64,000 nt of DNA from Dimorphilus gyrociliatus (lineage: Eukaryota; Animalia; Annelida), in assembly GCA_904063045.1 (NCBI GenBank), contig CAJFCJ010000028.1:372001-436000 (forward strand), read 5' to 3'. The translations under genes and the position numbers were made by a program. The notes beneath the pieces were generated by a model. The model saw only the letters and a list, made by a program, of their open reading frames with translations, was not told the DNA's origin and did not search any database. Every line of letters starts with the position of its first letter. The stretch's first letter is position 1. Of this stretch, positions 11,791 to 35,942 are shown one piece after another.

Positions 11791-13342
<1,552 letters not shown>

Positions 13343-14858: not shown

Positions 14859-15623
14859 TGGTTAAACTTCTTTCTATTATTCTAGTCACAAGACCTACCT
14901 ATAAGAAGGATTATATGAATCGGAAATGGATTTCGTTCTAATGATTCGATCCTATTTAAAATTTCTTATTTATTATATTAGTAATATTTTTTTTTGAATC
15001 AATTGTGACCTTTTTTTTTAATATTCGATTTTGTATTTCCTTTTTTTATCTTTTTAACTTCTCTATTGATTAATTCCGTATTTAGAAGGTAGATTAAATT
15101 AAAAATTTAGTTTCTATAGCTATGAGTAATACATGTTACAATGACTAATAAACGAATAAATGGTATTAAAAAAATATACTCAAGTTTTAGTATAATTTAT
15201 TAGGAAGAGAGAGAGAGAGAGAGGGAGAGGGAGAGGGAGAAAGAGAATGGGGAGAGAATGAGAAATAAATAAAAGATGATAAAAAATATGATAATACGAA
15301 GAATGTTTAATGCTGCTTAGTAATGTTTTAGTAATTTTTTGTTCAAAAAAATGCGTTCATGTATTGAGCATTCAATAATTATTGTTAGTAGATATTTCTT
15401 TAAATAGAAAAGAAAATGAAAAATTCTTGATATCTTTAAAAATAATACTCATTCCCATTAAAAGGCTTTTCTATTAAAAGAAAAAACAATCTTCCATTTG
15501 GCATACGTATAATAATACTCTGTAAAATATAAATTTTTCATTCATCACATTTATATTGTTCTTCTATATTTCTTTCTCATTTTTCTTTATTTTTCTTTCT
15601 TATTTGTTAATTCTGTTGAATTT

Positions 15624-17433
15624 TTATGCTACGGTATCAACTGATGGAGTTGCTGTTAGTAGCTTAGTTTTCATATGATCTCCGTAACAAGTTTGATCGT
15701 GTTGACAAACTTCTAACGAACGTGTAGTGTCACCGTAAGTATTACCAAAATGATATCTTCTCTCTATAGAGGAAAATAGTAGTTTATGTTCAATGTTTGC
15801 TCAAGTTGTTTTGATTTAAGTAAACATACGGTGACAGTGGCCTGTATACTTAGGTATCATTCCAGGCTGTACAAAGATCCTCTTAGAGTACATGGCTCCT
15901 GGACCTGCTGCTGGTACGGGAGCAGCTTTGTACAAACTAACAGGCGTTGATCGGCTTAATGCTGCTCTTTCTGTCTCTCCGTAAAAATTTTCCAGTCCTA
16001 GTTTCGTAGTACGATTATATCTGTAAATATTATATTATGAAGCGCCATCTTACGACCTTTTCATCATTAATGAAGTTCCCTATAAGAGAAACCAAAGTAA
16101 ATTTACCTTGCACCAAGTCCCAATTCTGTAACATCGATTCTAGGCACAAATCCCAAATATCCAGGTACTGGAGGTTCTGTCGGTAACCTCTTATCCTCAG
16201 CCATTACTGGACGCCTTGGGTGAGTATCACGATAAGTGTTCAAATGGTCCCTGACCTCGGGGTCAAAAGCTTTTGCCTGTAGAACAGGCCTGCAGCTGGA
16301 ACTCATTCTCAAAGAATGAGCGTCATTACTAGTTTTCTCATAATTTCTTAAGTGCTCATCGATACAATAGTCGCAGTCGACTTTATAAGTATCGCCAAAT
16401 TTAAAAGGCTTCCTCGGAATATATCCCGTATAGCCGGGAATCATTTCTTCGGTTAATTTGTTGTCTCCCGAAGGTTTAGGCAGACGTAGGTGTCTTGGCG
16501 GAATTGGTTCCAATTCCGGTCTAGCATCTTTATTCTGTTATCAAGCATATAAGATAGGCAAATATAGGACGATAATTAACCGTTATATTTCACTATATAA
16601 CTTTATAGACTTGTAGGTCAAGTATAAAATATTTAAATAGAGTAGAATTTAGCGTAGGCTTTCATAAACGGACTTGGATATTGAAGAAAGCCTAGATTTA
16701 TAATAGAAGAGAAGAAATTACGATAAAATTCAATATTAAGTCGATTACTACGATAATCTTAGAATTAGCAAAAAAATTGATTTTTTATCTTTAACCGTTG
16801 GCGAGAATTTCAAAGAAAGATAGGAAGAAATTAAATTAAGCTTTCTCTCTCTTTTTCTCAGTTCGTTATTTATTTAATGATTAACGTCGTCATTCCTTCA
16901 CCAAGTAAATTACGTGAGAATTTATTTCAACAATTAGAGCTTAATGAATTGTTGCTAGGTGATAAAACCAGTTAAAAGGGTTTGCCATTTGACAATGCTA
17001 GTGACAGTTTTCGTTCAATTTCTGCTCTTAGTGGACATTTTAAACAAGGCTAATTGACGTTGGTAACGGAGGCTTAATTATCCCATTCAATATATAAAAT
17101 AGGGTACATAGGAAAAGAAAGCAATGGAATTGAATAGGGAATTCAACTAACCGTAAGCAATTCGTGAGTGTCTTGTCCATAAGTTTTTCCATTCCTATAT
17201 TTTAACTGTGGAATAAAACCCCGATACCTAAAGGATAAAAAGAAGAATAAACACGCTAATTACTTATGACAAACATTCTTCAACCGTTTTCTAATGTTTG
17301 TACAATTCTAACCACAAACGGCCAATAAGAAAAGACAAACACTTTACCCAGGCAATTGCGTTCCGTCCTTCAATCCAGCGAAGGATCTTCTCTGTTCTAA
17401 AGTCGGTCCGCCACCGTATTGTATAGTAGCCAT
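15624..17433 (-). CDS. C10orf82/SPMIP5-like sperm/ciliary microtubule inner protein (PGY-repeat, FAM166-related); 5 coding exons
   Basis: Spliced protein MATIQYGGGPTLEQRR...PGYRGFIP...IPGYTGYIP...EPPVPGYLGFVPRIDVTELGLGARY...MIPKYTGH. EPPVPGYLGFVPR..VTE.G.GARY resembles human C10orf82 [25 protein letters not shown]. Confidence 0.75.
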
Positions 17434-18235: not shown

Positions 18236-21200
18236 ATGGGAAGTACTAATACCAAAGTCACATCAGGAGTAAAAGCCCAAGCAGCCGGTATAACTTTTGA
18301 TTTATATTCTTTGGTCAACGTCAAAGGAGGCGGTGAACTTATCGATTTAATGAAGGATGCAAACAAAAGTCGAAATTATAAAGAATTGGATAGAAGGATT
18401 ATTGAGGGTGTAAAACCATTTTTATATAATGAAGGTCGTGGAAAAATTGTTGATATAAGAGAGATTTTAGCGTATAGAAGTTGTAAAGCCTCTCCAGAAA
18501 TCAATTTTGAAATGTCGGACACCGAATTTATAAAGGCTAATGGCTATCAGACAAAAGAAATCTGTTGGAAATTGGATAAACTTGGAGCAGTTGGGGAAAC
18601 AATATTACATACTTGTTTATTAAGTTCTACAGCGTCACACGCTGATTTAGCAAAACGTTTATTAAAACATTTTCCAAAGTTGATTAAGGTAAATAATCAT
18701 TGTTTTTCTTTAGTACAAGGTTAGCCGATCGAATATATTTGTATATTTACAGCATATACGTATTTTGTTTATAGAATTCAATTGTGTCCTCTATTTTTTA
18801 TTAACAATGAAATTGTTATCAATAGGATATGTACCTGAGTGACGAATATTACGGAGAGAATGTCCTTCATATGGCTATTGTAAATGAGGATCCTGCCATG
18901 GTTAAATTCCTTCTAGACCACGAGGCTGATATACATCAGAGATGTTGTGGTAACTTTTTCCTTCCGGAAGACCAAAAAGTTTATAAAACCCATTCCTGGC
19001 TACACGAATGGTACGATCTACCAACCGATACCAATTATTATGGTTATACGTATTGGGGTGAATATCCTATTGGATTTGCCGCTTGCCTAGGTCAAGAGGA
19101 ATGTGTAAGGTTACTAGTAGCAAATGGAGCTGACCCTAATCTTGTTGATTCAAATGGGAATACAGTTCTTCACCTTTTAGTTATACACGATCAAAAGGTA
19201 AGTAGTATATTTTTTGACCTTTAAACTTTTACCTTTATTAGTTTAAATACTTTTATAATATAAAAAAAGTTTATTTTTATATTTTCTGTACTGTAAAGAC
19301 TTGTAATATATAATATTATTTAATAATATTGTCCTAAAACTGATTAAAAAATTGAACTAAATGTATAAAAAAAGATGAGGGAACGAGCAATGACTGGAAA
19401 GGTATGTAACATAAAGTCTGTTTTGTAATACTGTTTTTAAAAGCGGTTAGTGAAGAAAGAGAGGAAAAAAAGTGATATAAAAATCAATATAGCGTCTAGC
19501 ATGATTGTAATGTTTGGCTGTCACATCCTGAAAACATTGATTTATCGACGTGTTTGTTCAATGCAATTGCGGAATTATAACGCCGTCAGTTCGGTTAATG
19601 ACAGCTATGATTTTAATAATGAACGACATTTACTGATTTTTTGCGTTCCATTTATATATTTACATTTCCAAGTCGATAATTCGCACTCAGAATTACTAAA
19701 ATCTAAGAGAAGTTCATTTATATTCATACGTTCAATTTTCTAATAGTCTTTCTTATACAAACTATGTATTTTATCTAAAACTGTATATAAGAAACCTTTT
19801 TTCATAATAATCAATTAAAATTCAAACAAACATCATTACGTAATACTTAATTTATGCTTTACCAGTTAAGTGTAAGGTAAAGGTATCAACGGCATCTCTT
19901 TTTTTTTTACCTTCTTTGTATATTTCATCATAGGCTTAGTTTTTAAATTTATAAATAGAAAAAGTTGAAAAGGAAAGGAAAGAAAAAAGAGTTGAATTTT
20001 TTTGAAAGCGTTTGTTTTTTTGGTTCTCGTTCATTGAATAGTTTAAAATAAGATACAATAAAAGCACTCTGTTTTATTTCAATATCGTTTAATAGAGCCA
20101 TTAAAGGGTTGATTGACGTCGATAATATCGGAAGGAAATGATCATAAACATAATTGCCTTTTAAAAAATAAAGAATTCTAATCTTTTTTCCTCGTTCCTT
20201 TTTAACTAAACCTAACAGATTATCCTAGTCTTATCATTCTGATTTAGGGGAGATATTAATACAAACTCTTTCACTTCTCTTAACATTTATATAGGCTTAA
20301 CAACACGAAAAGACCTAGAATTCTTTAGATGTGATAGATAATTTTACTAACATTATCGGTAAATATAGATAAATTATGAAAAGAACTTGAAAAAAAAAAT
20401 ATTGATATACAGTATATATATAGCTATATATAAATATATATATTGTCTAAATATAGGAAATGTATGAAAGAAAGTGAGAATGTTTAATTTTGTTGTTTCT
20501 TTTTAAAATAGGATAACTAAAAAAATAATTATAATAATATTTGTTTTTTTTTTAAAAAAACAAACCACCATAAAATTTTCCCTGGTAAAAATTTGCAGTA
20601 CTGCCAACCAGAGGTTTGAATTTCTTTTTACAAAACAAAAAAAAAGATGATTAAGTTTATTCTGGTTTAAGTTATTTGTTATATTTATTGAATTTTACCT
20701 ATTCCCATACATTTATATAATTATATATATATATATGTGTATATAAAAAGATATATAAATTTATATATACAATGTATATATTTAGATATAAATGTATAAA
20801 GTTAAATGTAAAAGATTCTCCCTTTAAATTTTGTAATTAGCAATTGTTTGATTCATTTTGATTTAACATAGCATTATCGTATAATAAGAACAAAGGAAAA
20901 GCAATAATCAATGAATATTAATAATTTGAAAAGTAAAAAGTATTCATACATTTTTTGCAGTATTTAGGCTTTATTGTCGACAGTTATTTACTAAACCAGT
21001 AGAATGTTCTGTGACTAACTTAATGTCTTATTATTTTTTATAATGTAGTTTTTGTATTGAATGAATTTTGGTGATTAATTTTTTTTTGTTAATATTAACA
21101 AATTTATCTATATAAACAGTATATATATATATATTTATATTTAATTGAGAAAAAGATAAAAAACAAAAATTCCTCTTTTCATCATATTAAACCTATTTAG

Positions 21201-21763
21201 ATCCTAGTGAAATTAGTGGCAAATTTTTTTTTTATAAAAAAAATTCTACACTACCTTATTCCTTAATCAAACCCTTAGTCAATATATTTATTTAACCCCT
21301 GATTTTTTTTTTTGTACACCTCTAAAAAAAAATATACAGGAATATACAAATGCCCAGGTTTGTAACAAAAAACAAAAAGAAAAGGGAAAAAAATTACCAA
21401 AACACTCTTTAAAGAGAAAGTTTAATATTATTGTTTTTTTAAAAAAACAATTATTTTATTTTTTTTTAAAAAATCAGAAAAAAAAGTTTCTTTTTCTTGT
21501 AGAAAAAAATTTTATATATTTTTTTATACTTTGCTTTTTTTTTTTTTAAAAAAAAAATACACAAATTTTTCTTCTTACTTAAAGAAAAATACTGGAAAAA
21601 TGGAAAAGAAAGAATATAAAACGAATATAATATTTTATTATCTTTTAGTTTATATAAAGAAATAATGAAAATAAAATAAAATAGCCTAAATTATTTTTCA
21701 ATTGTTAGTTATTCATTTATATAATATGTAAAGGGCTCATTTATGTATTATATACAGTATACG

Positions 21764-21813
<50 letters not shown>

Positions 21814-24800
21814 AATAGTATATAATACAAATACACTTGAACCATTTCTTTATTCTATATCTGTTTTTCTATCTAATGTATTATGCATAGCATATTTACA
21901 TGTTTATATGTTTCTTTATAGTATATGCATGAATATGTTGTGAATACAAATATTCAGTATGTAGATTATATGTTATGTATTTGTAAATATATATACAATA
22001 TATGCAAATATAAACTAATAATTATACAGACATTTCATATATCGTATATTCTATATACATAAATATTGTAACTAATTAGGTGTTTATAAAGTTTTTTTTT
22101 ATTTATTTTTATTAAAAGTATCTTTTGTTTTTTTAAAGAAAAAAAAAGACTATTCTTTTCTTTTTTTTCTTTTACTATTAGAAATTTAAAGAAACTTGTA
22201 TATTTAACGAAAGTTAATATGCATCTATATATTAATTATATATATATATATATAGATGCATATCTATTCTTTTCAACTTTAGTTTTTATTCTAATTAATC
22301 CTTTTCAGGAAATGTTTGATTTATTAGTTGAACTCGGAGGAAAATTGAATATAAGAAATCATCAAGAGTTAACTCCTCTAACTTTAGCTGCGAAATTAGC
22401 AAAAAAAGAGGTATGAATAATAAATTATAGGGATTTATTTATGAAAAAGAATAAAGGATATTATCTGTTATTTAGTTAAGTAATAAATGATTTCGAAGGA
22501 TTAAAAGCGTCATCTAGAATAAAGAAAGCATAAATTTATTAAGAGTTTTTTTTCGTTTATAGTGTAATAAATTCTCGTTTATTGTTTTTATTTAAGAATG
22601 GTCTGTTGTAGTACTTTTCGTATTAAAATCATAACAGATGTACGAACATATTCTTAAAATTGAAAGAGAAGTTTATTGGACATTTGGTGATGTTACTTGC
22701 GCTGCATACCCCCTTGACCATATTGATACTATTTCATCTACTGGAGAAATTAATACCAACTCTGCAATGTACCACGTAATATATGGAGATAAACAAGAGC
22801 ATATAGATATGATAGAAGGACTTATAGGTAATTTATTGGATCAGAAATGGAAGACATTTGCAAAATTTAGATTCCTGAGAAGATTCATAGTTTTCACAAT
22901 GTACTTTGCCGTTTTTGTTGTGGCTTTTTCTCTAAGACCCGGAACAGATACTGATCCTAAAATTCGCCCAGAAAATCGAACCAACTCAGCCGGTCAAACA
23001 TTTTTAGTAAACAATACTATAAAGAATCCTTGCTATCTCCAAAGAACAAAAACATGGGAAGATTACACTCGATTAGTATTAGAATCAATAATGGTTTTAG
23101 GAGCGACAATATATATATTATTGAGTTTGAAAGAAGTCTATCATCAAGGCTATAAGATATTCTTTCAAACGTTAAAGTCAGCTCCAGCCAAAGCTATGTT
23201 TCTTATGGCAAACTTTTTCGTTCTCCTTATGCTTCCTGGAAGAGCCGCATGCGCATTTACATACGAAGATGTAATGGGGGTTCTAGCTATATTGTGTACA
23301 GCTCCGTATTTTTTATTTTTTTGTCGGTAAGTCATAAGAGAGTAAATCAATCATCGCCTTTAGTTTCAACGTTTTCTTTTCATTTGATTAGCGGTTTTAA
23401 GCTTGTGGGACCATTCGTCGTAATGATCTACAAAATGATTAGAACTGATTTGTTAAGGTTCTTTACGATATACTTGATATTTGTTATTGGATTCTCTCAA
23501 GGTGGGTAAAGATTTATATCTTTTTAATATCTAGTTTTATCTTTATTGCTATATTATCACTATTAACTATTCTGTATCCATTCTTGATAGGGAAAAACTT
23601 TTTCATACTATATAAGCATTGATATAAAATGTATTATATATATATATATATATATATATATTAGTATATATAAATTTATATATATATATATATATTTAAC
23701 TATATAATTTTTAGGTTAGCATAGCCTTTCGAAGCTGTAAATAAAAAAAAAACAAATTATAATTGATTATTTAAGCCTACTATATACTGTACCGAAATCG
23801 AGAAAATACAGTGTTCAATAACCCGGCCGAGGCAATCATGGGTTTGTTTATTATGTCATTGGCCCAGTTTGCTGATACTTATGAAAGTATGTCGGATTTT
23901 GGAATATTTCTTGGAATTTTTCCAAAGGTAGAAATAAATTTAAAAAAAAATATGGCCAATAAAAACTAGGTTAAATCGTTTCTTTTTTAAATTCTTGTAT
24001 TAAGTTTTTATCCATAAAAAACTTTTAGTTAAAATTGTTTCTCCATAGATTTTTATTAGTTTGTTTCTTTAGTTTAAAAGAATTTACAAACAAAACAAAA
24101 AGGTTGATGCAAAATATAAAAAATATACTATTCATACAACCTCATATACATACATGAATGTTTTTACTATAGCCTACTACATTTTATACCGCGATAAAGC
24201 TTGGACGATGTTCTCTGAACCTTTTGAAGCCGTTATGGCAATGTTTATAATGAATTTAGCACAGTTCCTTGATCTATACGACTCATTCTCAGAATTTGAA
24301 GAATTGCATTATATACCGAAGGTGTGAAAAGAATTGTATAAAGTAGTTATTAAACAAATTATGTATGTAGCATATAAAAATATACATAAACAGTAGGTTT
24401 TAGTATATTTTTATAAGTACATATTTAAACCCTTCGCTTGTTTACCATCACCTAAAAACAGCACCAAGAAAACCACGATATTTATATACTGTATATATAT
24501 ACTGTATATATATACATATATATATATATATATACACGTATATGTGGAAATGTGCATGGTGCTACTCTTTGAATATGTAGTTAGTTAGTCAACTTGTCAC
24601 AATTTTTTCACCAATACCTACATATAGTTTATCCAAATTTGTTATAATTTTACTAACAATCCTTATAAGTTTATTTATGGTTTAAAAATTTATAATTATA
24701 CTACTAAATTTAAAACGTAATAGAGGAAGAGAAAGAGAAGGAGAAAGAGAGAAAATGACAGAATTTATTGATTAACCAATTTAAAATTTAACTAATTAAT

Positions 24801-26832
24801 TCGCAAAGATATAATATATTCCAATTGTTTAATTAAAATTTATTATAAAACAGCCTACTATATCATATTTAGAAATACTCAACAATATTCATATTTTCAC
24901 GATCCTATTGAATCGTTTATGGGAATGTTTGTTATGTCTTTGGGTGAATTTAAGGAGATATATTCATCTTTTCACCAATTCAAATTATATGACGTCGTTC
25001 CTAAGGTGCCTTTTATCTTTTTAAGTATAGTTGTTTAAAAAATAAAGGAAAAAAGAACAAAATTTTCTTGCTAATTCAGCTAATTAATTCTTCATGTCTA
25101 TCTTTCGATTTGTACTTGATTCAACCTTTGTCATTGACAAAGAATTAGTTAGTTGTTTACTCTATTCATAACATGATATAATTTGCATGAGAAAAGAAAG
25201 GTTTTATAGAGAATTTTCAAGAATAAATAAAAATCAAGTAGGGAAAAGAAACATAACAAAGATTATTAAAAATCCTACAAGTTAATTAATTTATTTTGCA
25301 TGTTAAGCATTTATTCGTCATATTATAAATGATTAAAGAAAAACAGTAAATATGTGACATTTTCTAATAGATACAGCTTTTTATAATGTTTAATTTTAAG
25401 TTTAGTACATTGGCACAATTAACCATTAATATAAAATAACCTTCCCCTATAATTTTTCAAACTATTCATAACGATTAATAGTCTTTACAAGTTAATCGTT
25501 AAGACGTGAATAGACATCTGATTAACCATTATAAATAATTGCAAATATTCTAAAGTCTATTTATCGTCTTCATGAATATAAATTAGATGAATGTACATTT
25601 ATTTATTTATTCATATTTTATTCTAACATGTAATATATCGATACTTGATTACCAATTCTTGTCTTATAAATTATTTAAGATTATTGATAGTGACGAATAG
25701 GGTAATCAAATATCATATATCAGTTTTTTAGCTGTGTCGTAGAAAATCCTAAATGACAGTTGCATGCAGGAATGTTCGTTATGTTTAGAAGTACCCCAAG
25801 TAATATCTTCCTACATCCCATAGAAGCAATGATGGGCATGTTTATTATGTCTCTCGGCGAATTTGCCGACATTTATGAAGCTTTTTCTAGTACACCATCC
25901 AATACAATGTCCCAGGTTCCTAGCGTTGTTAAATGTTGAAAAAAACCCTATTCTTACCGTCTTCTACTTTTAATCATTTCCAAAAGAATTCAGTGTCTCT
26001 TACCTCGGTGTCTCTTTATATTTTATTTCTTTTTTTTTAAAAAAAAAAAATAAATCAAATAAAAGAAAATTATATTAATATATACTGTATATGTGCTTTT
26101 TCTGTATATATATAAAGTATATATACTGTATATACTGTATATTAGTATATATTATATATATTTTTATACACAGTATATATATATATTTATATATATTGCC
26201 ATTAAATCAATCATTCACATTTTTTTTTCAATTTCCATGTTAAAATATTTCTTTTCTTGCTTTTATTAAGTTTGGTTAATGTTGTTTCAACTTATTCTAT
26301 ATACTTTTTATATTAGTTAGAAAGTATTGCATTCCTATACCTCTTATAATTTTAATATGAAATTTCTACAGTTAATATTTGTTGTCTATATGGTACTCGT
26401 TACTTTACTTCTGGTAAATATGTTAATCGCTATGATGGCTAATACGTATCAAGTTGTCTCCGAAACCCAAAAAGAATGGCTTAGACAGGTATTATTTTAT
26501 TGTTAGAGTATATACCCCTGCCAATACTTGCTATTATTGTTTTCTATAGTGGGCCAAAATTATTCTTGTAATTGAACAAACTGTAACAACATCCGAAAGG
26601 AAAAAACAGTTGATCAATTATTCAAGACCAATGAAAGATGGACGAAGAGCATTGGTTATAAAATGGCATCAATCCGTAAAGATACTATATATTGTTTCGT
26701 CACATTTCCTAACATCTCTCTTTGCAGGAAAAGGAAAAAGAAGAAATTCAAGAACAAAAAGAGGAAATAAAAAACAGACATATATCCATTGTCCAGAAGA
26801 ATTTATCGGATAGGCAAGCGAAAGCATTATAA
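18236..26832 (+). CDS. nan: TRPV channel, Nanchung/OCR subfamily. Constitutive exons 18236-18688, 18826-19197, 22309-22410, 22638-23326, 23392-23501, [one of four pore cassettes], 26372-26488, 26550-26675, 26728-26832
   Basis: N-terminus [16 protein letters not shown]...[13 protein letters not shown] resembles insect Nanchung (MGNTESNVTSGVKKQA..LYKFVNLKGGG). Ankyrin repeats ([30 protein letters not shown]); S4-S5 [16 protein letters not shown]; S6/TRP region [14 protein letters not shown]...EWLRQWA. Confidence 0.93.
21766..21809. repeat. (AT)n microsatellite in TRPV intron
   Basis: About 22 uninterrupted AT units. Similar (AT)n or (AG)n tracts occur elsewhere, e.g. ~37233-37262, ~39756-39788, ~38279-38302. 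Confidence 0.9.
23776..23927 (+). CDS. nan: TRPV pore cassette exon A
   Basis: TTAAG|CC TAC...CCA AAG|GTAG, 152 nt, phase 1 in / phase 0 out. Encodes [51 protein letters not shown] with no stop. Confidence 0.85.
24173..24321 (+). CDS. nan: TRPV pore cassette exon B
   Basis: CTATAG|CC TAC...CCG AAG|GTGT, 149 nt, phase 1/0. Encodes [50 protein letters not shown]. Confidence 0.87.
24854..25005 (+). CDS. nan: TRPV pore cassette exon C
   Basis: AACAG|CC TAC...CCT AAG|GTGC, 152 nt, phase 1/0. Encodes [51 protein letters not shown]. Confidence 0.87.
25770..25915 (+). CDS. nan: TRPV pore cassette exon D
   Basis: ATGCAG|GA ATG...TCC CAG|GTTC, 146 nt, phase 1/0. Encodes [49 protein letters not shown]. 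Confidence 0.87.
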
Positions 26833-27534
26833 ACTTTTTACAGATTATAAAAATAAGACTATTCAATACACCTATATATACTTTTTGCATAAATGAATAT
26901 CAATTATGATTCAATCAGAGGAAAAGTACAAAAAGAAGAAAGGAAAACGAATAAATCTAAGAGAAAAAAAAACCTAACTGACTAACTTCCTTCCTTTTCT
27001 ATCAATAAATTATCTTTTATGTATTTTCTTATACCTCCTCCTCTTACAAGTTCAATAGATCGATAAGAAATAGTTAGAAAGAAAGAAAAAAATTGACAAA
27101 AAAAATAATATTTATTGCGTGTTCTTTCCATTCAAGATGTTTATACGCTACCAATAATTGAATATGTCTATAATTTTTTATACAAATGACAAAGAAACAG
27201 TGCACTTTTTTATTTTAAAAAATTATAAATATGAACCAACAACAAACTATTTTGAAAAGAATCTTTTTTTATCTTATATTTCGTTGGTTAATCAAGCTTA
27301 AAATCACCATAAATCGCTTTTTTAGCATTTATATTAGAGAAATTGTCATTCAATCGTTCAAAATATTGAAAACAAAGTTGCACTGTAATCAAAATATTCT
27401 ATTATTCTAGAACTAAGTTAACCTGAATGTTGTAAGGTGAAGAAAAGTTGAATTATAAATAAAAATAAAGGAAATTTTATGAGATAGACATACTACTTAA
27501 AAAAGTGGACTAAACGCCTTAATCAAATGATAAT

Positions 27535-28929
27535 TTAGCTAGGTTGTTGGCGTCTTCTTTGAGTTCTTTGCTTATCAAAACGAGCCTCCATTTCATCCAA
27601 AACTCTTGGTGTAAATCTGACAACTAACTTAACCGTTCCTAGAGAAAAAAGAAATGATTATTAATTAATTACCTCTTTCTTTGTCATATATATGTATAAA
27701 TAGATAAATTATGGGAAAACAATTCATAATAAAAAACTTACCAGAGGCAGCTTTCAATAGTTCGACTGCTTTTTCGTGTGGTTCGCCTTCAACACTCTAT
27801 CAAATTACAAATTTGATTTACCTCTTGTCGTGGACAAATAATAAATTACTTACAACTCCATTTACGGATAATAGTTGATCGCCTCTTTTTAATCCACCTA
27901 TTTTATCGGCAATACCATTTGGAATGATTCTCGATATATAAATTGGTGAATTTTGTTCCTTTCCTCCCATTACATTAAATCCTAAACCTTCGTCAGTTTT
28001 CGGCAATTCGACAACTCTTGGATGAGCGTGTCCTTCAGAGGCAGCAAACGCTGCAACTGTTGCTTTAGCTGTAGCATTTGCTCGAACCTATTTCGAAGTT
28101 TAAAAATATACTTAATTATTTGATTAAGGAAAACAAAATAAAATCAACCTCCGGGCTAGCGTGAACGTCTACCGTTTCGTAAACATTCTCGTAAACCTCT
28201 CGAACAGCGTGGAGAAAATCACTTTGTAGTACTTTTTGAAGGGCAGCTAACTTGGGACTCGCAACTTCGGCTATATTTTTAAAAAGAAGAAAGGCGGAAA
28301 ATTAGAAAAATATAACAGTGAATATATAGTAAATATAACGTTTAACGTTAGCTTTCAGTTTCTATGACGGTATGTGAATAGTAACAGCTACTCTACTTTT
28401 AAGTCGATCAATTAGCCTCTGACAAAGTTAATAAACGTGCCTAGAATATATTAAATTATTGTAGACTCTGAAACGGGATTAACTATGGAAAGACCCCCGA
28501 AATGAGAACTGCACGCTTCAATCGTCATATGAAATGATAGTAATTTACAATTTTCGATTTTTTTACCCGGACCATTTCTCAATAAAACTACTACAACAAG
28601 TAATACTTACTCTTTTGCAACTGTTCCAGTAATTCTACTGCTCTTGCAACATCTGGAAAAAAAACACATATATTTTAGATTCTTTTCAGTATACTGTGAT
28701 TTAACATGGCAATTAGTCAACAGATATAGAACGAGTTCGTAGTAAGCCATTGAGACTAGGTGAAAAAATAGATAACCTATTCGAAAATATACGAATTATT
28801 AATTCGTCCAGATTATACAACTAATGATGAATGTAAAAGAAATTTTAAAGATAACAAATTTCAATTGTAAAATGATAAGATCATACCTTTTTCCAAATTT
28901 AGAGACGGTTCACCTACAGTAGACGCCAT
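27535..28929 (-). CDS. LIN7: Protein lin-7 homolog (Veli/MALS; L27 + PDZ)
   Basis: [27 protein letters not shown]...[21 protein letters not shown]...[52 protein letters not shown]...[12 protein letters not shown]. Confidence 0.96.
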
Positions 28930-29093
28930 GTTGTAAACAAGTGATCACGTGGATTTCCAATTATAGAAAAACTGGTAAACTTAGAAAAACACTCGATGCG
29001 GGGCTTATAGTCGAAAAAATTGTTCATTATAAGTTATCGAACTATAAAAACTAATCAGTTTTCAAATATTATTTGTAAAAATAAATATTAAAA
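28930..29093. promoter_or_regulatory. Putative bidirectional promoter LIN7/GPR89
   Basis: Only 164 nt separate the divergent ATGs. Contains an E-box CACGTG at 28945-28950. Confidence 0.55.
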
Positions 29094-31367
29094 ATGTCAT
29101 TAATCCTTGATTCATGTATCATTCTTTTCTCTTTGGTTGGTACAAAATCAATCTAATGATATCTCTCTTCAATATCGTGTATCAAATAATTTAAAAATCT
29201 ATTTTCAGTCGTTATTCTTTGGCGGTGGTTGGGTTTTTTTCCTAAAGCAACTTTTCCGCGATTATGAGGTTAATATATAGTTTATTAAAAAAGAAAACAA
29301 TTGTTCAACTAACAGTATGAACTTTCATTATTCTCAATTCTAGGTTCATCATTGGGTAGTATTACTAGTCTTCTCAATAACTTTCGCCCTATCATGTACT
29401 ATGTTTGAGCTCATTATATTTGAAATTTTGGGCTTTCTAAATTCGAAGTAAGTATTATTAAAAATTTGTGAAAAAATAATAAACTTTTTAGCTATTTCAT
29501 TAATATGTTTGTGTTTGATATTATTTGAACAGTTCAAGATTCTTCTTTTGGAAATTAATACTTTTCTGCATGTTAGTAATAGTAATAGCAGTTCTACCGT
29601 TCTATATAGCCTATTTTATAGTTGGAAACATTCCATTAGGTTATTTTCTTAAATAGATAAAGTAAAACCTATTAAATTAAATTTTTGTTATTTTTACAAA
29701 CAGTACCAAGAAAACGAAGAACCAAAGTAGCTTTAGCTGTTTTTTGTTGGCTAGCTTTTATCTATTTCTTTTGGAAATTAGGTGATCCTTTTCCAATACA
29801 TAGTCCAAAACATGGTAAAATACAATATACAGTATATATACAATAAATATGTATATATATATTTATATATATATATTTTACATTTAATAATGAATATCAA
29901 ATTATATCTTCAGGGATAATATCAATAGAGCAATGTATTGGTCGTGTAGGTGTTGTTGGTGTAACATTAATGGCTATACTATCTGGTTTCGGTGCTGTAA
30001 ATTGTCCGTATACTTATATGTCATATTTTGTCAGGTATAGTTGTACAACTTAGTAATTCTATGCCTTATTTCCTAAGGTCTTTTGAACTTGATTTTTATT
30101 TTATTTCTATCTTTTAGACAAGTAAGTAATACTGATATTCAGAGTGTTGAGAAAAGAATTATGCAAACTATGGATATGATATTAATGAAGAAAAAGAGGT
30201 ATATACTAATATTATATACTTTATATATGTAATTGCATTGACTAACTATCTAACCCTTAATTTAATATTTAAGGATTGCGTTAGAAAAGAGAGAAAATAT
30301 GAGACGATCGGCTGTTTCACAAGAAAGAAGAGGATTTTGGAGTATGATAAAGCAAGTAACTTCATCGCAAAATAACGAAAGTATGTGACAAGATTCAGTT
30401 AAAAGGAATGCAATAATAATCAAAATGATCTATATACAGTATATACATATTTCCTTTTATTATTATCTAGATATAAAAATTCTTAAGCAAGAAGCAGAAG
30501 CATTAGAAGAATTAAGTAGGCAACTTTTTCTGGAGTCAGTCGATTTACATAACGAACAAGAACGAATTCAGTATTCGACAACATTTAAAGGGAGATATTT
30601 TAATATATTAGGCCATTTCTTCTCTATATATTGTTGTTGGAAAATATTCATGGCCACAATAAATATTGTATTTGACCGTGTTGGAAAAGTTGACCCTGTA
30701 ACGAGGGGTATTGAAATTGCTGTTAATTATTTTGCCATTCAATTCGACGTAAAATTTTGGTCGCAACAAATTTCTTTCGTTCTCGTTGGAATAATTGTAG
30801 TAACGTCTATTCGAGGTTTATTAATAACTTTAACAAAGGTTGGTCTTTATATCTCATTCATTTATCAGATTAAAATATAATATACTATATAGACAATAAA
30901 TATTTGCTAATGTAATTCTCTTTTTAAAGTTTTTTTATGCAATTGCAAGTAGTAAATCATCGAACGTGATTGTTTTAGCTCTGGCTCAAATAATGGTAAT
31001 TAATTTTTTATTCATATTAAATAATATCAACTTTTTTAGAATAATTAGCATATTGAATAAATTTCATTAATTAAACATAAAATAAATAAACAACAGGGCA
31101 TGTATTTTGTATCGTGCGTTCTTCTTATGAGAATGAATATGCCTTTGGAATATAGGTAAATATATATATACGCCTAACTTAATGATTAATCCTTGATATT
31201 CTAAATATTTTTTCCATAGAATAATTATAACTCAAGTATTGGGGGATTTACAATTTAACTTCTATCACCGGTGGTTTGATGTGATATTCTTAGTTAGTGC
31301 TCTAAGCAGTATAGCATTCTTATATATAGCTCATAAACAAGCACCAAGTTCTAATATTTCAAACTGA
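29094..31367 (+). CDS. GPR89: Golgi pH regulator GPR89 (GPHR), multi-exon
   Basis: [10 protein letters not shown]...[18 protein letters not shown]...[13 protein letters not shown]...[14 protein letters not shown]...[17 protein letters not shown]...[12 protein letters not shown]...[21 protein letters not shown]. Confidence 0.96.
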
Positions 31368-31829
31368 TAACATTTTAATATATATATATATATTTATTTA
31401 ATAAAATAAATATTGTTGAACAAAGAAAAGAAAAAAACTTCAGTTATTTTAATCTTAGTATTACTATTTTAAATAAATAAAAAAGAATATTCATATACAA
31501 TATCAACTTTGTATAAGTGTTTTACTTTTTTTTCGAAATATCAATGTAAAAGTATTGTAAATTTGAAATTTTTTTTATCAGCTACATAATCCTTTTTTAA
31601 AATATTTCATACTACTTTTCATTTATTCTCTATTCTACTAAAATTTTGATTTCACTAACAAACTTTAAAAAGGAAACAGCTGACAAAGCGGATATTGTGT
31701 ATAGTCGATTTCGTAAGCGGAAGTGGAAATAAACATTCACTGTACTGAATTTAGTTCCAGTGACGAATTCATTATATTTTGTCATTGGAACATTTTTTAT
31801 TCGTAGTTTCGATTAGATTATTAATAATA

Positions 31830-34144
31830 ATGGACTTTGACGAAATAATGAGGGCGGCTCAGGAAAAAAGTCGCCTTCTAGATAAGGTAATACATCCAGG
31901 GTTTTAAATTTGCCTATTATCGCCCATGAAAATTTTTTACATAGATCTCATACGGTCTATCGATTTACTATAAAAATTACTTGAGTTTAAAAGTAGATAA
32001 TTATTGATATTTCTAAAGAGATCTTCATATTTAAATTTAAAATATTTGTTTTTTTGTTTTGTTGTTTTTGTTTTATTCAATATTGCTATTGTTTTCTTTT
32101 ACAGACAAAGGTTGATAAAAACACGCAGCGGGACAGAGTTTTGAAAAACTTGCAAAGAGATGAACGTTTACGAAAGCAGAAGGACACAAACTGTAAGTAG
32201 ATAGCAAAATTGTTGCATTATTAAATATAAATCGAATCTTTATATAAAGCTGAGGAGAAAGCTGAACGTAAAAGAAAAATTATGGAAAAAGTGAATAAAG
32301 ATCTTTCTAATCACCAAAGTAATGATGGAAAGAGCAAAAAGTCTTTGGAAAGGAGGGCTCATAATAACAAGTCCAAACCTATGACTGATGCTGAAATAAG
32401 AGAGCATCGACTTGCTCTGCAAGAAAAAGCTCGAAAAGTGCTACACAAACCGTTAAACAAGCTTTCAGCCACTGAACCAAGGCAGACAACAACTCTTAAA
32501 GATTCCACCTCTAGACCTGCCAGAAGTGATTTGATTCCTGCATCCCAGCTGGGCTTGAAACCTTTGTCGCAAAAGATGGAAGACATTTTAGCTGCAAAGA
32601 ATAATATTAATTATACAACAAGAGTTATATCAAGTGACAATAAAAGTGAAAAAAAGAAGCATAAGAAGAAGAAAAAAGAGAGAGATGAATCACGTTCTAA
32701 AAGAAAAGAAAAAGTCGCAGAACCTGTGTCAAAAAAACCCAAATTAGTTAAACATTCCGTTAGACAGGCTAATATGAAACCACTGAGTTTTGATGAAATA
32801 ATAAAGCAGGCTAATGATAATAAAGGTTTGATACTATTTTATCGATCAACTAGATCTAGTTTTATTTGCTGTACTATATAAAAACAAAGACAATTTTTCC
32901 CCACAGATAAGGTTGTTGATTGGAAAAAAATAGAGTTGGAACAAAAACAGCGGAAACAGGCTATAGAAAAGCAAAAAGAAATTGATAGAAGAGAAAAGTT
33001 AAGAATTTTAGTGCCTGAAAAGAGTCCTAGAAAAAATTCGAGAGCAGTACCACCACAACCCCCATCAAGTGAGTTCTTTTTGTTTTTTTTGATAGAAAAG
33101 CTTGGATTTATTATTTCTTTCTTTACGCACGTCTTATAAATAAATATCAATGAAAAAGGCGGAAAATAAACTTCTTGATAAAAGCGAAATAACTTATTTT
33201 TAATCTCCCTCAGGATCAGCCGTAAAGCCAGCAGTCCCTCACCAATCCAGAGCTTCAACTGTTCAAACGCAATCTGTTTCTAGATCGTCTATTAATCAAA
33301 AACTGGTCGAGAAGAAAAAAGAGAGAAAACCTTCACCGGTACCTGTACCAAAAATACCTAAGGAACTTTATAATTCCGACTATGGCTATGAAGAAGAGTA
33401 CGATGATGAAATGAATGATTTTATTGACGACGACTATGGTGATGGAGTAAATTCAAATGAAATATGGAAAATTTTTGGTTTAAATAAAAAAAAATATGAC
33501 AGAGTAAATGATTTCGATGACATTGACAATATGGAGTCAAATTTTGGAGAAATTGACGCAGAAGAGAGACGATCGTGAGTTAAAATTCTTTTTTAATTGC
33601 AAAACTATCGACTAGATGGCTCCCATGTAGCCAGAAGGATTGGTTTAAAATTACTCTAACATCTGATAAGAGATGAATTTGCGATTATATGCTCTTTTTA
33701 GCACGTCACTTGGTTTTATGTAGGAAAAACTCGTATCTACTCTGAAATGCATACAAACAGTATCTTGTTTTTAATGCAACTTTGCTTATGTTTTCCTCTA
33801 TAATCGGTATTCGAAAAGTGCATAAACGCACGAATCGACCTTTCAACAGTAGTGCTAGCCTTCAAAGGACCGCTAAACCACTTGTAATATAGTATATCTT
33901 TTTAAAAGGTTAAGTTAGCCTTTGTTGTGTAATAGTAAATTTATAACCATCTTAAGTATGAAACTAGAGTAGGAAAATCAGAAATGGCATTTTAAAGACT
34001 AGAGAATAAAATTAGATTTACATTGAATATGTTTTATTTTCCTTTAGAGCAAAGATTGGAAAGCGTGAAGATTTAGAAGATATTCGACGTGAAGAAGAGG
34101 AAAAAAAGAGAAAGAGAGAGCGATTGAAAAAGAAAAAATTCTAA
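31830..34144 (+). CDS. SPT2: SPT2 homolog (SPTY2D1-like histone chaperone), multi-exon
   Basis: Starts MDFDEIMRAAQ; long Lys/Ser-rich middle; C-terminal SPT2-type motif YDDEMNDFIDDD...EIWKIFG...MESNFGEIDAEERRSAKIGKREDLED. Confidence 0.85.
33613..33758 (+). ncRNA. Candidate intronic H/ACA snoRNA (unverified)
   Basis: Stem AGATG(33614-18)/CATCT(33660-64), then ANANNA box ATAAGA (33666-71), second stem ATGAATTT/AAATGCAT, then ACA (33753-55). Lies in the 473-nt last SPT2 intron. Folded by eye only; no target identified. Confidence 0.25.
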
Positions 34145-35942
34145 TTTTTATACTTTTTAATTTTTTACCTGAAAGTGTAAAAAATTCACTGGCACAAGCA
34201 AAAAAAGATAATAAAAGACAAGAAGAGAAATTGGGTAAAAAAAAGGGTTATAGGAAAAATATAGAATTCGTAGTTTAATACGAGGGTTGAATAAAGAAAA
34301 AAAAAAATTTTATCGTTTACTATTTGTTGAGGAAGTTGTATTACCAAAAGTAAAAAGAGCACTAAAAGAAAAAAAATAAAATACCATTTCCCAGCCGTTA
34401 AAAGTAATATAGATAAAATTTGTTGAAAGAATATGCTTGTATTATTTTTATAGGTCTTTTCAAGGTATTGAAAAAAACAGTAAATTTCTGTTTTGCATAT
34501 TAACACGTAACTTGACTGATTCACCTCAATCTATCAATAGTCCACTCAGAGTCCATTAACTTAGACTCTTTCCATTTCCTACTTTTTTAAGTCGATAATA
34601 TCAATGAAATATGCTGGAAATGATACTTCATATAAGAATTATAAAGTTTGCTTTTAAAAGTAGGTTAAATAAACAAACCGCCAATTGAGTTAAATATTCT
34701 CAATGCAAACTTTGTACCGAGTCGCTTTATTCGCTAAGACGATTTTTACGGGGTAAGAAAAAGCCTCAAGTGAATTAACGACGTATAACAGAACGCATTC
34801 TGTATAAATAAAACGCCTCTTGAGATTTTAACAAACAGATTTATTACAGGCAGCTGTGCGATATTCCGACCCATAAAGACGAATAGGTTCATTTCTACCT
34901 TTATAGCCCGATTATACAAATTGCAAACTATTAAATATCATGATTAGAATTGTGTTTTTCTTTTTATTCTTTCAACTTCAAAGTATTTTTCTTTGTCTCT
35001 TCAAACAAAAACGAAATTAAGAATAAAAACATTTCTAGTAATTTATATATATATATATAGAACATATTTGTTTTGTTTTTCCCTTATATTTATGCAGAGA
35101 GAATAGTTCAATAAATCAAAATTCTTTTCCTTTCAATGAGTACATGTTCACACAATTTAAAACAGGTATAATTAACAATTATGAATATTCATAATTAAAG
35201 ATTGTATAATTTATATTTCTTTGATACTTGTGTCCTTTTATTTTTTTGTTCTGTAACTGTTATTTTATTTTACAGTATCTTAATCAAGAAGCTCAGTTCT
35301 ACTTTAAATAATGTTGTTACTTAGAAATTTCCGTCTCTAATCTAGCGTATAATAATTTAATAAATTATCTCTTAATTGATTATTTATTATTTCCTGAAGG
35401 TACGAATAAAGAATTCAAAATAGTAGCAATATTTAACCATAATTTCTCATCTCCCATGTCACTTTTTAAACTCGTCCTCCCTCCCCCCCGACATCACTTC
35501 CCTCCCCCTTTTAACCTAAAAATTTCCACCCATATTCTATATCATCTGTCTGGTTGGCTGGCTAGCTGACTGGACTGGCTGTCTATCAGTCTGTCCATCG
35601 TTTCTTCGCTTAATTCCCTTTTCTCTCTTTTTTCCCCCTGAATTAATAATAGTTTTCTTTCTATTTTATTAAAAGGCTTTTTATGGTTATTCTATTTTTC
35701 TATACCTCAGCGATTACATTGATATTATTATTAATAATTCGTAGTAGTAGTAAAGGATACAGTTTATAGCGATAAAGTTATATAATAGAGATTGAATTAT
35801 AATCTTTTTTTAACCTAATCAAATAGAATGAGAAAAAAAGGAAAAAACGAAATTCGTCTAGGTCCATTGCAGTTTAACTAGTTACAGCAGCAGTAAGAGT
35901 TAAAATTTCTTAGGTAGGCCTAAGGCATTTGGGTTTTTTTCC

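Follow-up and report, generated by a model that had tools for sequence, protein, structure and literature searches.

A probable cluster of four mutually exclusive pore exons in the Nanchung channel gene of the annelid Dimorphilus gyrociliatus

Splicing that alters the pore of an ion channel has been described in several channel families. NALCN has alternative pore exons (exon 15 or exon 31) that swap selectivity-filter residues and are widespread in invertebrates, annelids and molluscs included (Senatore et al. 2013, PMC3557258). Invertebrate Cav3 (LCav3) uses exons 12a and 12b to set alternative extracellular turrets above the filter, changing Na/Ca selectivity (PMC4436565), and TRPM3 has splice variants with pore loops of unequal length (PMC9290681). 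Among TRPV channels, insect Nanchung (Nan) and Inactive (Iav) assemble as a 2:2 alternating tetramer (PMC12808645); the filter motif of Nan and OCR-2 is TLGEF..Y, and acidic and aromatic residues at filter positions govern Ca2+ permeation in TRPV channels and in OSM-9 (PMC4164786). Here we describe a Nan-type gene of the annelid Dimorphilus gyrociliatus in which four homologous exons for the outer pore stand in tandem between the exons for transmembrane segments S5 and S6. The gene lies in a stretch of 64,000 nucleotides (positions 372,001 to 436,000 of contig CAJFCJ010000028.1, assembly GCA_904063045.1), referred to below as the window, and positions are counted from its first letter. We consider it likely that these exons form a cluster of four mutually exclusive pore exons in a single Nanchung gene, derived by tandem exon duplication.

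Exactly four homologous exons, 146-152 nt in length, are found within 2.1 kb between the S5 exon and the S6 exon. They are called cassettes A to D here, in their order along the gene:

23776-23927 (152 nt), + strand: cassette A, AG/GT borders, open frame, filter SLAQFADTY
24173-24321 (149 nt), + strand: cassette B, AG/GT borders, open frame, filter NLAQFLDLY
24854-25005 (152 nt), + strand: cassette C, AG/GT borders, open frame, all 10 invariant positions present, filter SLGEFKEIY
25770-25915 (146 nt), + strand: cassette D, AG/GT borders, open frame, filter SLGEFADIY, of the canonical or ancestral type

Every cassette stands between AG and GT, leaves a remainder of 2 when its length is divided by 3, and is free of stop codons in the frame set by the S5 exon (one G carried over from that exon, then the cassette). 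The exon-like state of the copies goes beyond chance: only 4% of 150-nt frames in the introns of this gene are stop-free. The content of guanine plus cytosine (GC) is 0.30-0.39 in the cassettes against 0.17-0.24 in the introns, and in cassette C, the lowest of the four at 0.30, it still compares with 0.23-0.24 in the introns on either side. The translations align without large gaps at protein identities of 33-54%, with ten columns invariant (R, F, P.E, M, F.M.L, F and Y). Between copies, synonymous differences are saturated (pS 0.74-0.93), and non-synonymous differences stand at pN 0.33-0.44. A tblastn search found no fifth copy and no remnant of one in the cluster or in the rest of the window. 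Each cassette was aligned to residues ~733-765 of Nanchung 9nvo, which make up the stretch of pore helix and filter; by this alignment the product of each is predicted to run from the end of S5 through turret, pore helix and filter into the linker to S6. That is the composition given in the preliminary description of the locus, whose exon and cassette coordinates, phases and AG/GT borders are all exact to the base.

The cassettes differ from one another in the residues nearest the permeation path. Cassette D matches the published Nan/OCR-2 motif; D and C both fit a Nan-type filter of the form (T/S)(L/I)GEF..(D/L)Y, and A and B carry derived forms of it, with Ala-Gln where D has Gly-Glu. The filter of C contains a Lys, plus a Glu replacing Asp. 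From the filter to the end of the cassette, net charge is -3 in D, 0 in C, -2 in A and -4 in B, and turrets and post-filter loops vary in charge as well.

The reading frame of the gene admits these cassettes one at a time. When all 16 cassette combinations are translated, the frame stays open only in the four single-cassette mRNAs; the other 12 (no cassette, all pairs, all triples and the quadruple) meet a stop codon within the cluster or in the S6 exon. The use of exactly one cassette per productive transcript, which had been predicted for this locus, is therefore imposed by the reading frame. Transcripts with several cassettes or with none would presumably be cleared by nonsense-mediated decay.

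Assignment of the gene to the Nanchung branch of the TRPV family, also proposed at the outset, holds up well. The closest PDB match of exon 4 is the Nanchung chain of 9nvo (E = 5e-52, 180 bits), and weaker matches are Inactive (1.7e-29), TRPV6 (3.5e-13) and TRPV1 (~3e-5). Nan-type features are present along the protein: N-terminal ankyrin repeats, a match to Ion_trans on the S6 exon, and a TRP box (EWLRQWAK) after S6. In a tblastn comparison with the Tubulanus orthologue as query, the gene model is collinear with orthologues from end to end. By these matches the Dimorphilus gyrociliatus gene is best read as the Nanchung orthologue, nearer to Nan than to Inactive/OSM-9 or to vertebrate TRPV1-6. 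The gene was rebuilt as nine coding exons, with one cassette counted as exon 6:

18236-18688, + strand: exon 1, start codon and N-terminus, placed by tblastn with the Tubulanus orthologue; donor AAG/GTAAAT; within the complete open reading frame (ORF)
18826-19197, + strand: exon 2, ankyrin repeats (Pfam Ank, Ank_2, Ank_4; exon mapping)
22309-22410, + strand: exon 3, final ankyrin repeat and linker (exon mapping, complete ORF)
22638-23326, + strand: exon 4, pre-S1 to S4 region, ending ...FLFFC(R) in phase 2 (match to Nanchung 9nvo)
23392-23501, + strand: exon 5, constitutive, S4-S5 linker and most of S5 (85% identity to the sister-species contig L001)
26372-26488, + strand: exon 7, constitutive, S6 and the start of the TRP box (EWLRQ), beginning LIFVVYMV in phase 0 (Pfam Ion_trans)
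26550-26675, + strand: exon 8, TRP helix and post-TRP region (exon mapping, complete ORF)
26728-26832, + strand: exon 9, C-terminal tail and TAA stop, closing the ORF of 739-741 aa and ending where the annotated 92-aa model ends

Exon 5 encodes GFKLVGPF...GFSQ followed by one extra G (phase 1) at a GTGGGT donor, and the rebuilt model is a complete ORF of 739-741 aa with any one of the cassettes in place. In the public annotation the same gene (window 18236-26832) is broken up among three separate models, 292, 387 and 92 aa long. The annotated 387-aa protein, DgyrCDS13867, is identical to the window translation. Judged against the rebuilt gene, the public annotation is wrong, and a single nine-exon model fits.

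Comparison with a sister species gives evidence that at least part of the array is under selection. An exhaustive protein search with the large exon as query recovered a 90% identical ORF on Logan contigs from two runs. On the sister-species contig L001 (genomic, 2963 nt, Logan SRR23372229) the large exon is followed by the S5 exon, A and B, in unchanged order. Nucleotide identity to it is 91% for A and 90% for B, against 82-87% for constitutive exons and 36-69% for introns, the latter with many gaps. Synonymous (dS) and non-synonymous (dN) divergence from L001, by the Nei-Gojobori method, is as follows:

Cassette A: dS 0.33, dN 0.047, dN/dS 0.14
Cassette B: dS 0.49, dN 0.042, dN/dS 0.085
Exon 4: dS 1.28, dN 0.066, dN/dS 0.05

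The deficit of non-synonymous change is significant for A (P = 5e-4) and for B (P = 6e-5). Synonymous change is lowered in A and B too, to about half that of exon 4 (P = 9e-7 for the two together). Lowered synonymous divergence is a usual mark of regulated alternative exons, and its halving in A and B relative to the constitutive exon suggests constraint on them at the RNA level. On the strength of dN/dS and lowered synonymous change between the species, A and B are both maintained, with a split between them older than the divergence of the two species. The expectation that cassettes would show dN/dS below 1 in a relative is borne out for these two, and D is kept across phyla: it is the type most like the single or canonical cassettes of many other animals, and is highly conserved among them. 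One further observation concerns cassette A, in which a stretch of 51 nt (23828-23878) is unchanged between the two species, synonymous sites included.

Arrays of the same exon are found outside Dimorphilus. Mytilus, Crassostrea, Ostrea, Saccostrea and Dreissena each have one gene whose RefSeq isoforms vary in exactly the segment that begins at GFSQ and closes with the K ahead of S6; every isoform holds exactly one version of the cassette. Mytilus has three versions, the oysters and Dreissena two. Cassette counts at individual loci are:

Mytilus galloprovincialis: 3 cassettes (L012 28122-28277, 29253-29399 and 31552-31716)
Crassostrea virginica: 2 cassettes, between the S5 and S6 exons
ENA contig L007: 3 cassettes
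Metagenome contig L014: at least 3 cassettes
ENA contig L009 and metagenome contigs L015 and L016: 2 cassettes each
Owenia and Helobdella: 1 cassette each
Contigs L008, L010, L011 and L013: 1 cassette each

L004-L009 and the Mytilus cassettes agree in splice sites and phases, and the three cassettes of Mytilus and the two of C. virginica occupy the same intron positions as those of Dimorphilus. With its four cassettes, Dimorphilus has the largest of the arrays examined. A 2766-nt Logan contig is very likely a transcript, since it encodes a full 781-aa protein, and the pore in this protein is the alternative bivalve one. As the RefSeq models and several environmental contigs together show, the pore-exon array is not unique to the Dimorphilus gene.

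The alternative cassettes of other animals have pore types of their own. In the bivalve alternative cassette the turret is longer and bears two conserved cysteines (C-D-P ... P-C), and the filter reads NVG(D/E)FED (L012 31552-31716; L004 15433-15597; protein P0179). A further alternative type, in which LLDFG(G/S)TYE(T/S)F replaces LGEFADIY, is common to environmental contigs from unidentified marine animals, and one of these, L014, has it twice, beside a canonical cassette:

L009 6689-6835: LLDFG-type cassette
L014 879-1025 and 1145-1291: LLDFG-type cassettes
L015 5118-5264: LLDFG-type cassette

The relationships among these exons were examined in a maximum-likelihood tree of 28 cassettes and 53 columns, whose deep nodes are unresolved. 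Dimorphilus A and B (support 98/93), joined by C (92/81), form one clade, and D is placed among the canonical forms. The bivalve alternative cassettes form a separate clade with support of 100/99. A common origin of the annelid and bivalve alternative cassettes is rejected on the strength of these separate, well supported clades. The tree topology indicates, as far as alignments this short allow a reading, that the same exon was duplicated independently in different lineages. On this basis we tentatively propose, at a little short of an even chance, that the Nan pore exon is a hot-spot of recurrent tandem duplication in Spiralia, with four copies in dinophilids, two or three in bivalves, and two or three in at least two more marine lineages. 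If that is true, the hot-spot would provide single-gene repertoires of alternative Nan pores. Were the Inactive partner gene to have mutually exclusive exons too, the pair could yield a combinatorial set of heteromeric sensory channels whose ion selectivity varies with cell type, as an alternative to the duplication of ocr genes seen in nematodes.

Gene order is informative about the bivalve loci. A gene for a ciliary microtubule inner protein, CMI2B-like/SPMIP5, is the divergent upstream neighbour of Nan in Dimorphilus, Owenia, C. virginica and Mytilus, and this shared microsynteny backs the orthology of the bivalve and Dimorphilus genes. The arrangement is a head-to-head pair of cilium-related genes kept across annelids and molluscs. 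Between Nan and CMI2B-like/SPMIP5 no match to an X-box/RFX motif was found, and counts of the motif in the window are at chance level. Near the Nanchung locus there are also a beta-tubulin gene, a minus-strand gene for an L27/PDZ protein, and a model joining the Golgi pH regulator (GPHR/ABA_GPCR) to an SPT2 domain, which may be a fusion of two genes. Positions in the window are:

~15600-16520, - strand: CMI2B-like/SPMIP5 gene (also at loci L004, L006 and L012)
12209-13342, 27500-29000 and 29570-34150: spans of the other neighbouring genes

Signals that might govern the choice of cassette were sought within the cluster. Donors are weak at all four cassettes (GTAGAA, GTGTGA, GTGCCT and GTTCCT); of the seven constitutive donors, six open with GTA. 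The intron that follows cassette B contains, some 110 nt from the cassette, a 17-nt element, CCTTCGCTTGTTTACCA (24431-24447, + strand), that is identical in L001 amid otherwise diverged sequence and is a possible splicing regulatory element. A search for a pairing partner of this 17-mer found none better than shuffled controls (duplex -13.5 kcal/mol, against a mean best of -16.3). The only long inverted repeats in the cluster are TA microsatellites. TA-rich microsatellites and TATACTGTATA repeats occupy 23618-23712, 24480-24543 and 26078-26200, in three of the five cluster introns, where they could pair with one another; such pairing is probably due to chance, because their density is near the rate of the whole window (23 tracts per 64 kb).

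Several observations count against a cluster in which all four exons are exchanged in the mature message. The public annotation contains neither C nor D, and its middle model joins a cryptic donor in A to the acceptor of B and then continues into intron. L001 ends in a TA repeat just after B, and the comparison with the sister species covers A and B, not C or D. The other annelids sampled have a single cassette (Owenia, Helobdella, and contigs L008, L010 and L011). Searches of protein collections with a profile of the four cassettes and with the S5 exon gave genomic ORFs reading into introns and no spliced products, and five RNA runs with 5-9% of the cluster words lack the 693-nt large exon, so that no weight is given to these runs either way. 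Pairing of docking site and selector, of the type known from Dscam exon 6, was not detected in what is, with two species compared, a weak test. Partial use is one rival reading: D plus A and/or B would be alternatively spliced, while C would be recently silenced or very rarely used and not yet decayed. C indeed has no orthologue for comparison (L001 stops before it), its GC content is the lowest of the cassettes, and its donor, GTGCCT, is poor. Against silencing, however, C keeps an open frame (a 4% chance for random intron sequence), AG/GT borders, the right phase and all ten invariant pore positions, and it parted from A and B long ago, as the saturated pS shows, but still differs from them at a pN of just 0.34-0.36, where an exon that died early would be unrecognisable. 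We regard partial use as unlikely. A different account would make the cluster a device for regulated unproductive splicing that tunes the amount of channel through nonsense-mediated decay, with protein diversity secondary. The premature stop reached by 12 of the 16 combinations and the weak donors at all four cassettes would suit it; but it leaves unexplained both the amino-acid conservation of A and B (dN/dS ~0.1) and the presence of pore-defining residues in all four copies, and bivalve isoforms hold one cassette each, so that we find it very improbable.

Two simpler explanations fare worse against the comparative data. If one cassette were constitutive and the other three dead duplicates, the lack of alternative isoforms in the public annotation would follow naturally; but between the two species A and B have changed less than the constitutive exons and show significant purifying selection, and D is the canonical pore found across phyla. 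With D canonical and A and B under selection, at least three copies are therefore maintained, and the idea of relics is close to refuted. An assembly artefact, whether from uncollapsed haplotypes or a mis-join, is a general possibility for any tandem array, and TA-rich repeats do lie in three introns of this one. The copies, however, are just 33-54% identical in protein, a divergence from which the preliminary description had rightly argued against collapsed haplotypes; A is followed by B in the independent assembly of the other species as well, 81% of the words sampled from the region occur in a 2017 run, and orthologous arrays are present in chromosome-level bivalve assemblies. We give an artefact almost no credence. 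The array of four pore exons is real and probably functional, and we infer, with least certainty for C, that all four cassettes are used in vivo.

The scheme we propose for the four mutually exclusive pore exons would run as follows. Tandem exon duplication would have given rise to four alternative outer-pore modules, and splicing would set a single cassette between the S5 exon and the S6 exon. Inclusion of zero, two, three or four cassettes would lead to a premature stop and an unproductive mRNA. The outcome would be four Nan subunits of 739-741 aa, identical outside the pore. If the 2:2 Nan-Inactive assembly holds in Dimorphilus, the two diagonal pore loops of the tetramer contributed by Nan would be the ones exchanged. 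Judging by residues alone, an effect on selectivity may be expected: exchange of the cassette could equip different ciliated sensory cells with channels unlike in conductance, block or permeability to divalent ions, and the choice among cassettes may be specific to cell type.

Insecticides target Nan-Iav, the transducer-associated channel in the chordotonal organs of insects, and its OCR-2/OSM-9 counterpart underlies nociception in nematodes. To our knowledge, the part that the Nan pore loop plays in permeation is poorly known. Four pore modules on an otherwise identical subunit would make a natural structure-function series, to which mussels and oysters add independent sets of two or three, and these modules could be compared for Ca/Na permeability, conductance and block when expressed with an Iav partner. 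The Dimorphilus genome is compact, at 70-80 Mb, and here a miniature animal with a compact genome would have diversified a sensory channel by duplication of an exon rather than of a gene. Repeated duplication of the same exon in different phyla would also amount to parallel evolution of alternative splicing. A search of the literature for alternative pore exons in TRPV, Nan or OCR genes turned up no account of any (a survey of cephalopod TRP channels discarded isoforms by design). The remark that accompanied the first account of this locus, that no such TRPV pore-exon array had been described, thus stands for the literature; it does not stand for databases, which hold the bivalve isoform models. 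Alternative pore exons as such are already known from NALCN and Cav3, and the TRPV/Nan case is visible in RefSeq models and appears to be undescribed.

How the Dimorphilus gene compares with known systems may be set out from the nearest family members outward. Insect Nanchung (PDB 9nvo; PMC12808645) and C. elegans OCR-2 resemble it in ankyrin repeats, six transmembrane segments, TRP box and the (T/S)(L/I)GEF..Y filter, and differ in having one pore sequence in the sequences compared, at the protein level. The bivalve 'TRPV5-like' genes, which are Nan orthologues, are like it in family, divergent neighbour, phases, the identity of the duplicated exon (from GFSQ to the K that precedes S6) and the holding of one cassette per isoform. 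They differ in having two or three cassettes where Dimorphilus has four, in an alternative cassette that forms its own clade and so points to an independent duplication, and in the place of the canonical copy, which comes first in bivalve arrays and last in Dimorphilus; the bivalve arrays are known here from automatic RefSeq models. TRPM3 is a TRP channel in which alternative splicing in the pore loop alters the pore, as is proposed for Dimorphilus Nan, but it belongs to the TRPM subfamily and does not exchange a whole module. In TRPM3 a short stretch is inserted or removed through an alternative splice site, and Oberwinkler et al. (2005) reportedly found that its splice variants switch selectivity. 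Cav3 exchanges only the turret of domain II, with no pore helix or filter, between two alternatives, and its functional effect is established by electrophysiology; the two-cysteine turret of bivalve Nan recalls the cysteine-rich alternative turrets of invertebrate Cav3. NALCN, finally, is a four-domain channel on another branch of the superfamily, in which one of four pore loops is swapped between two alternatives (EEEE against EKEE or EEKE), whereas in Dimorphilus the exchange would affect every Nan subunit in the tetramer and would draw on four alternatives.

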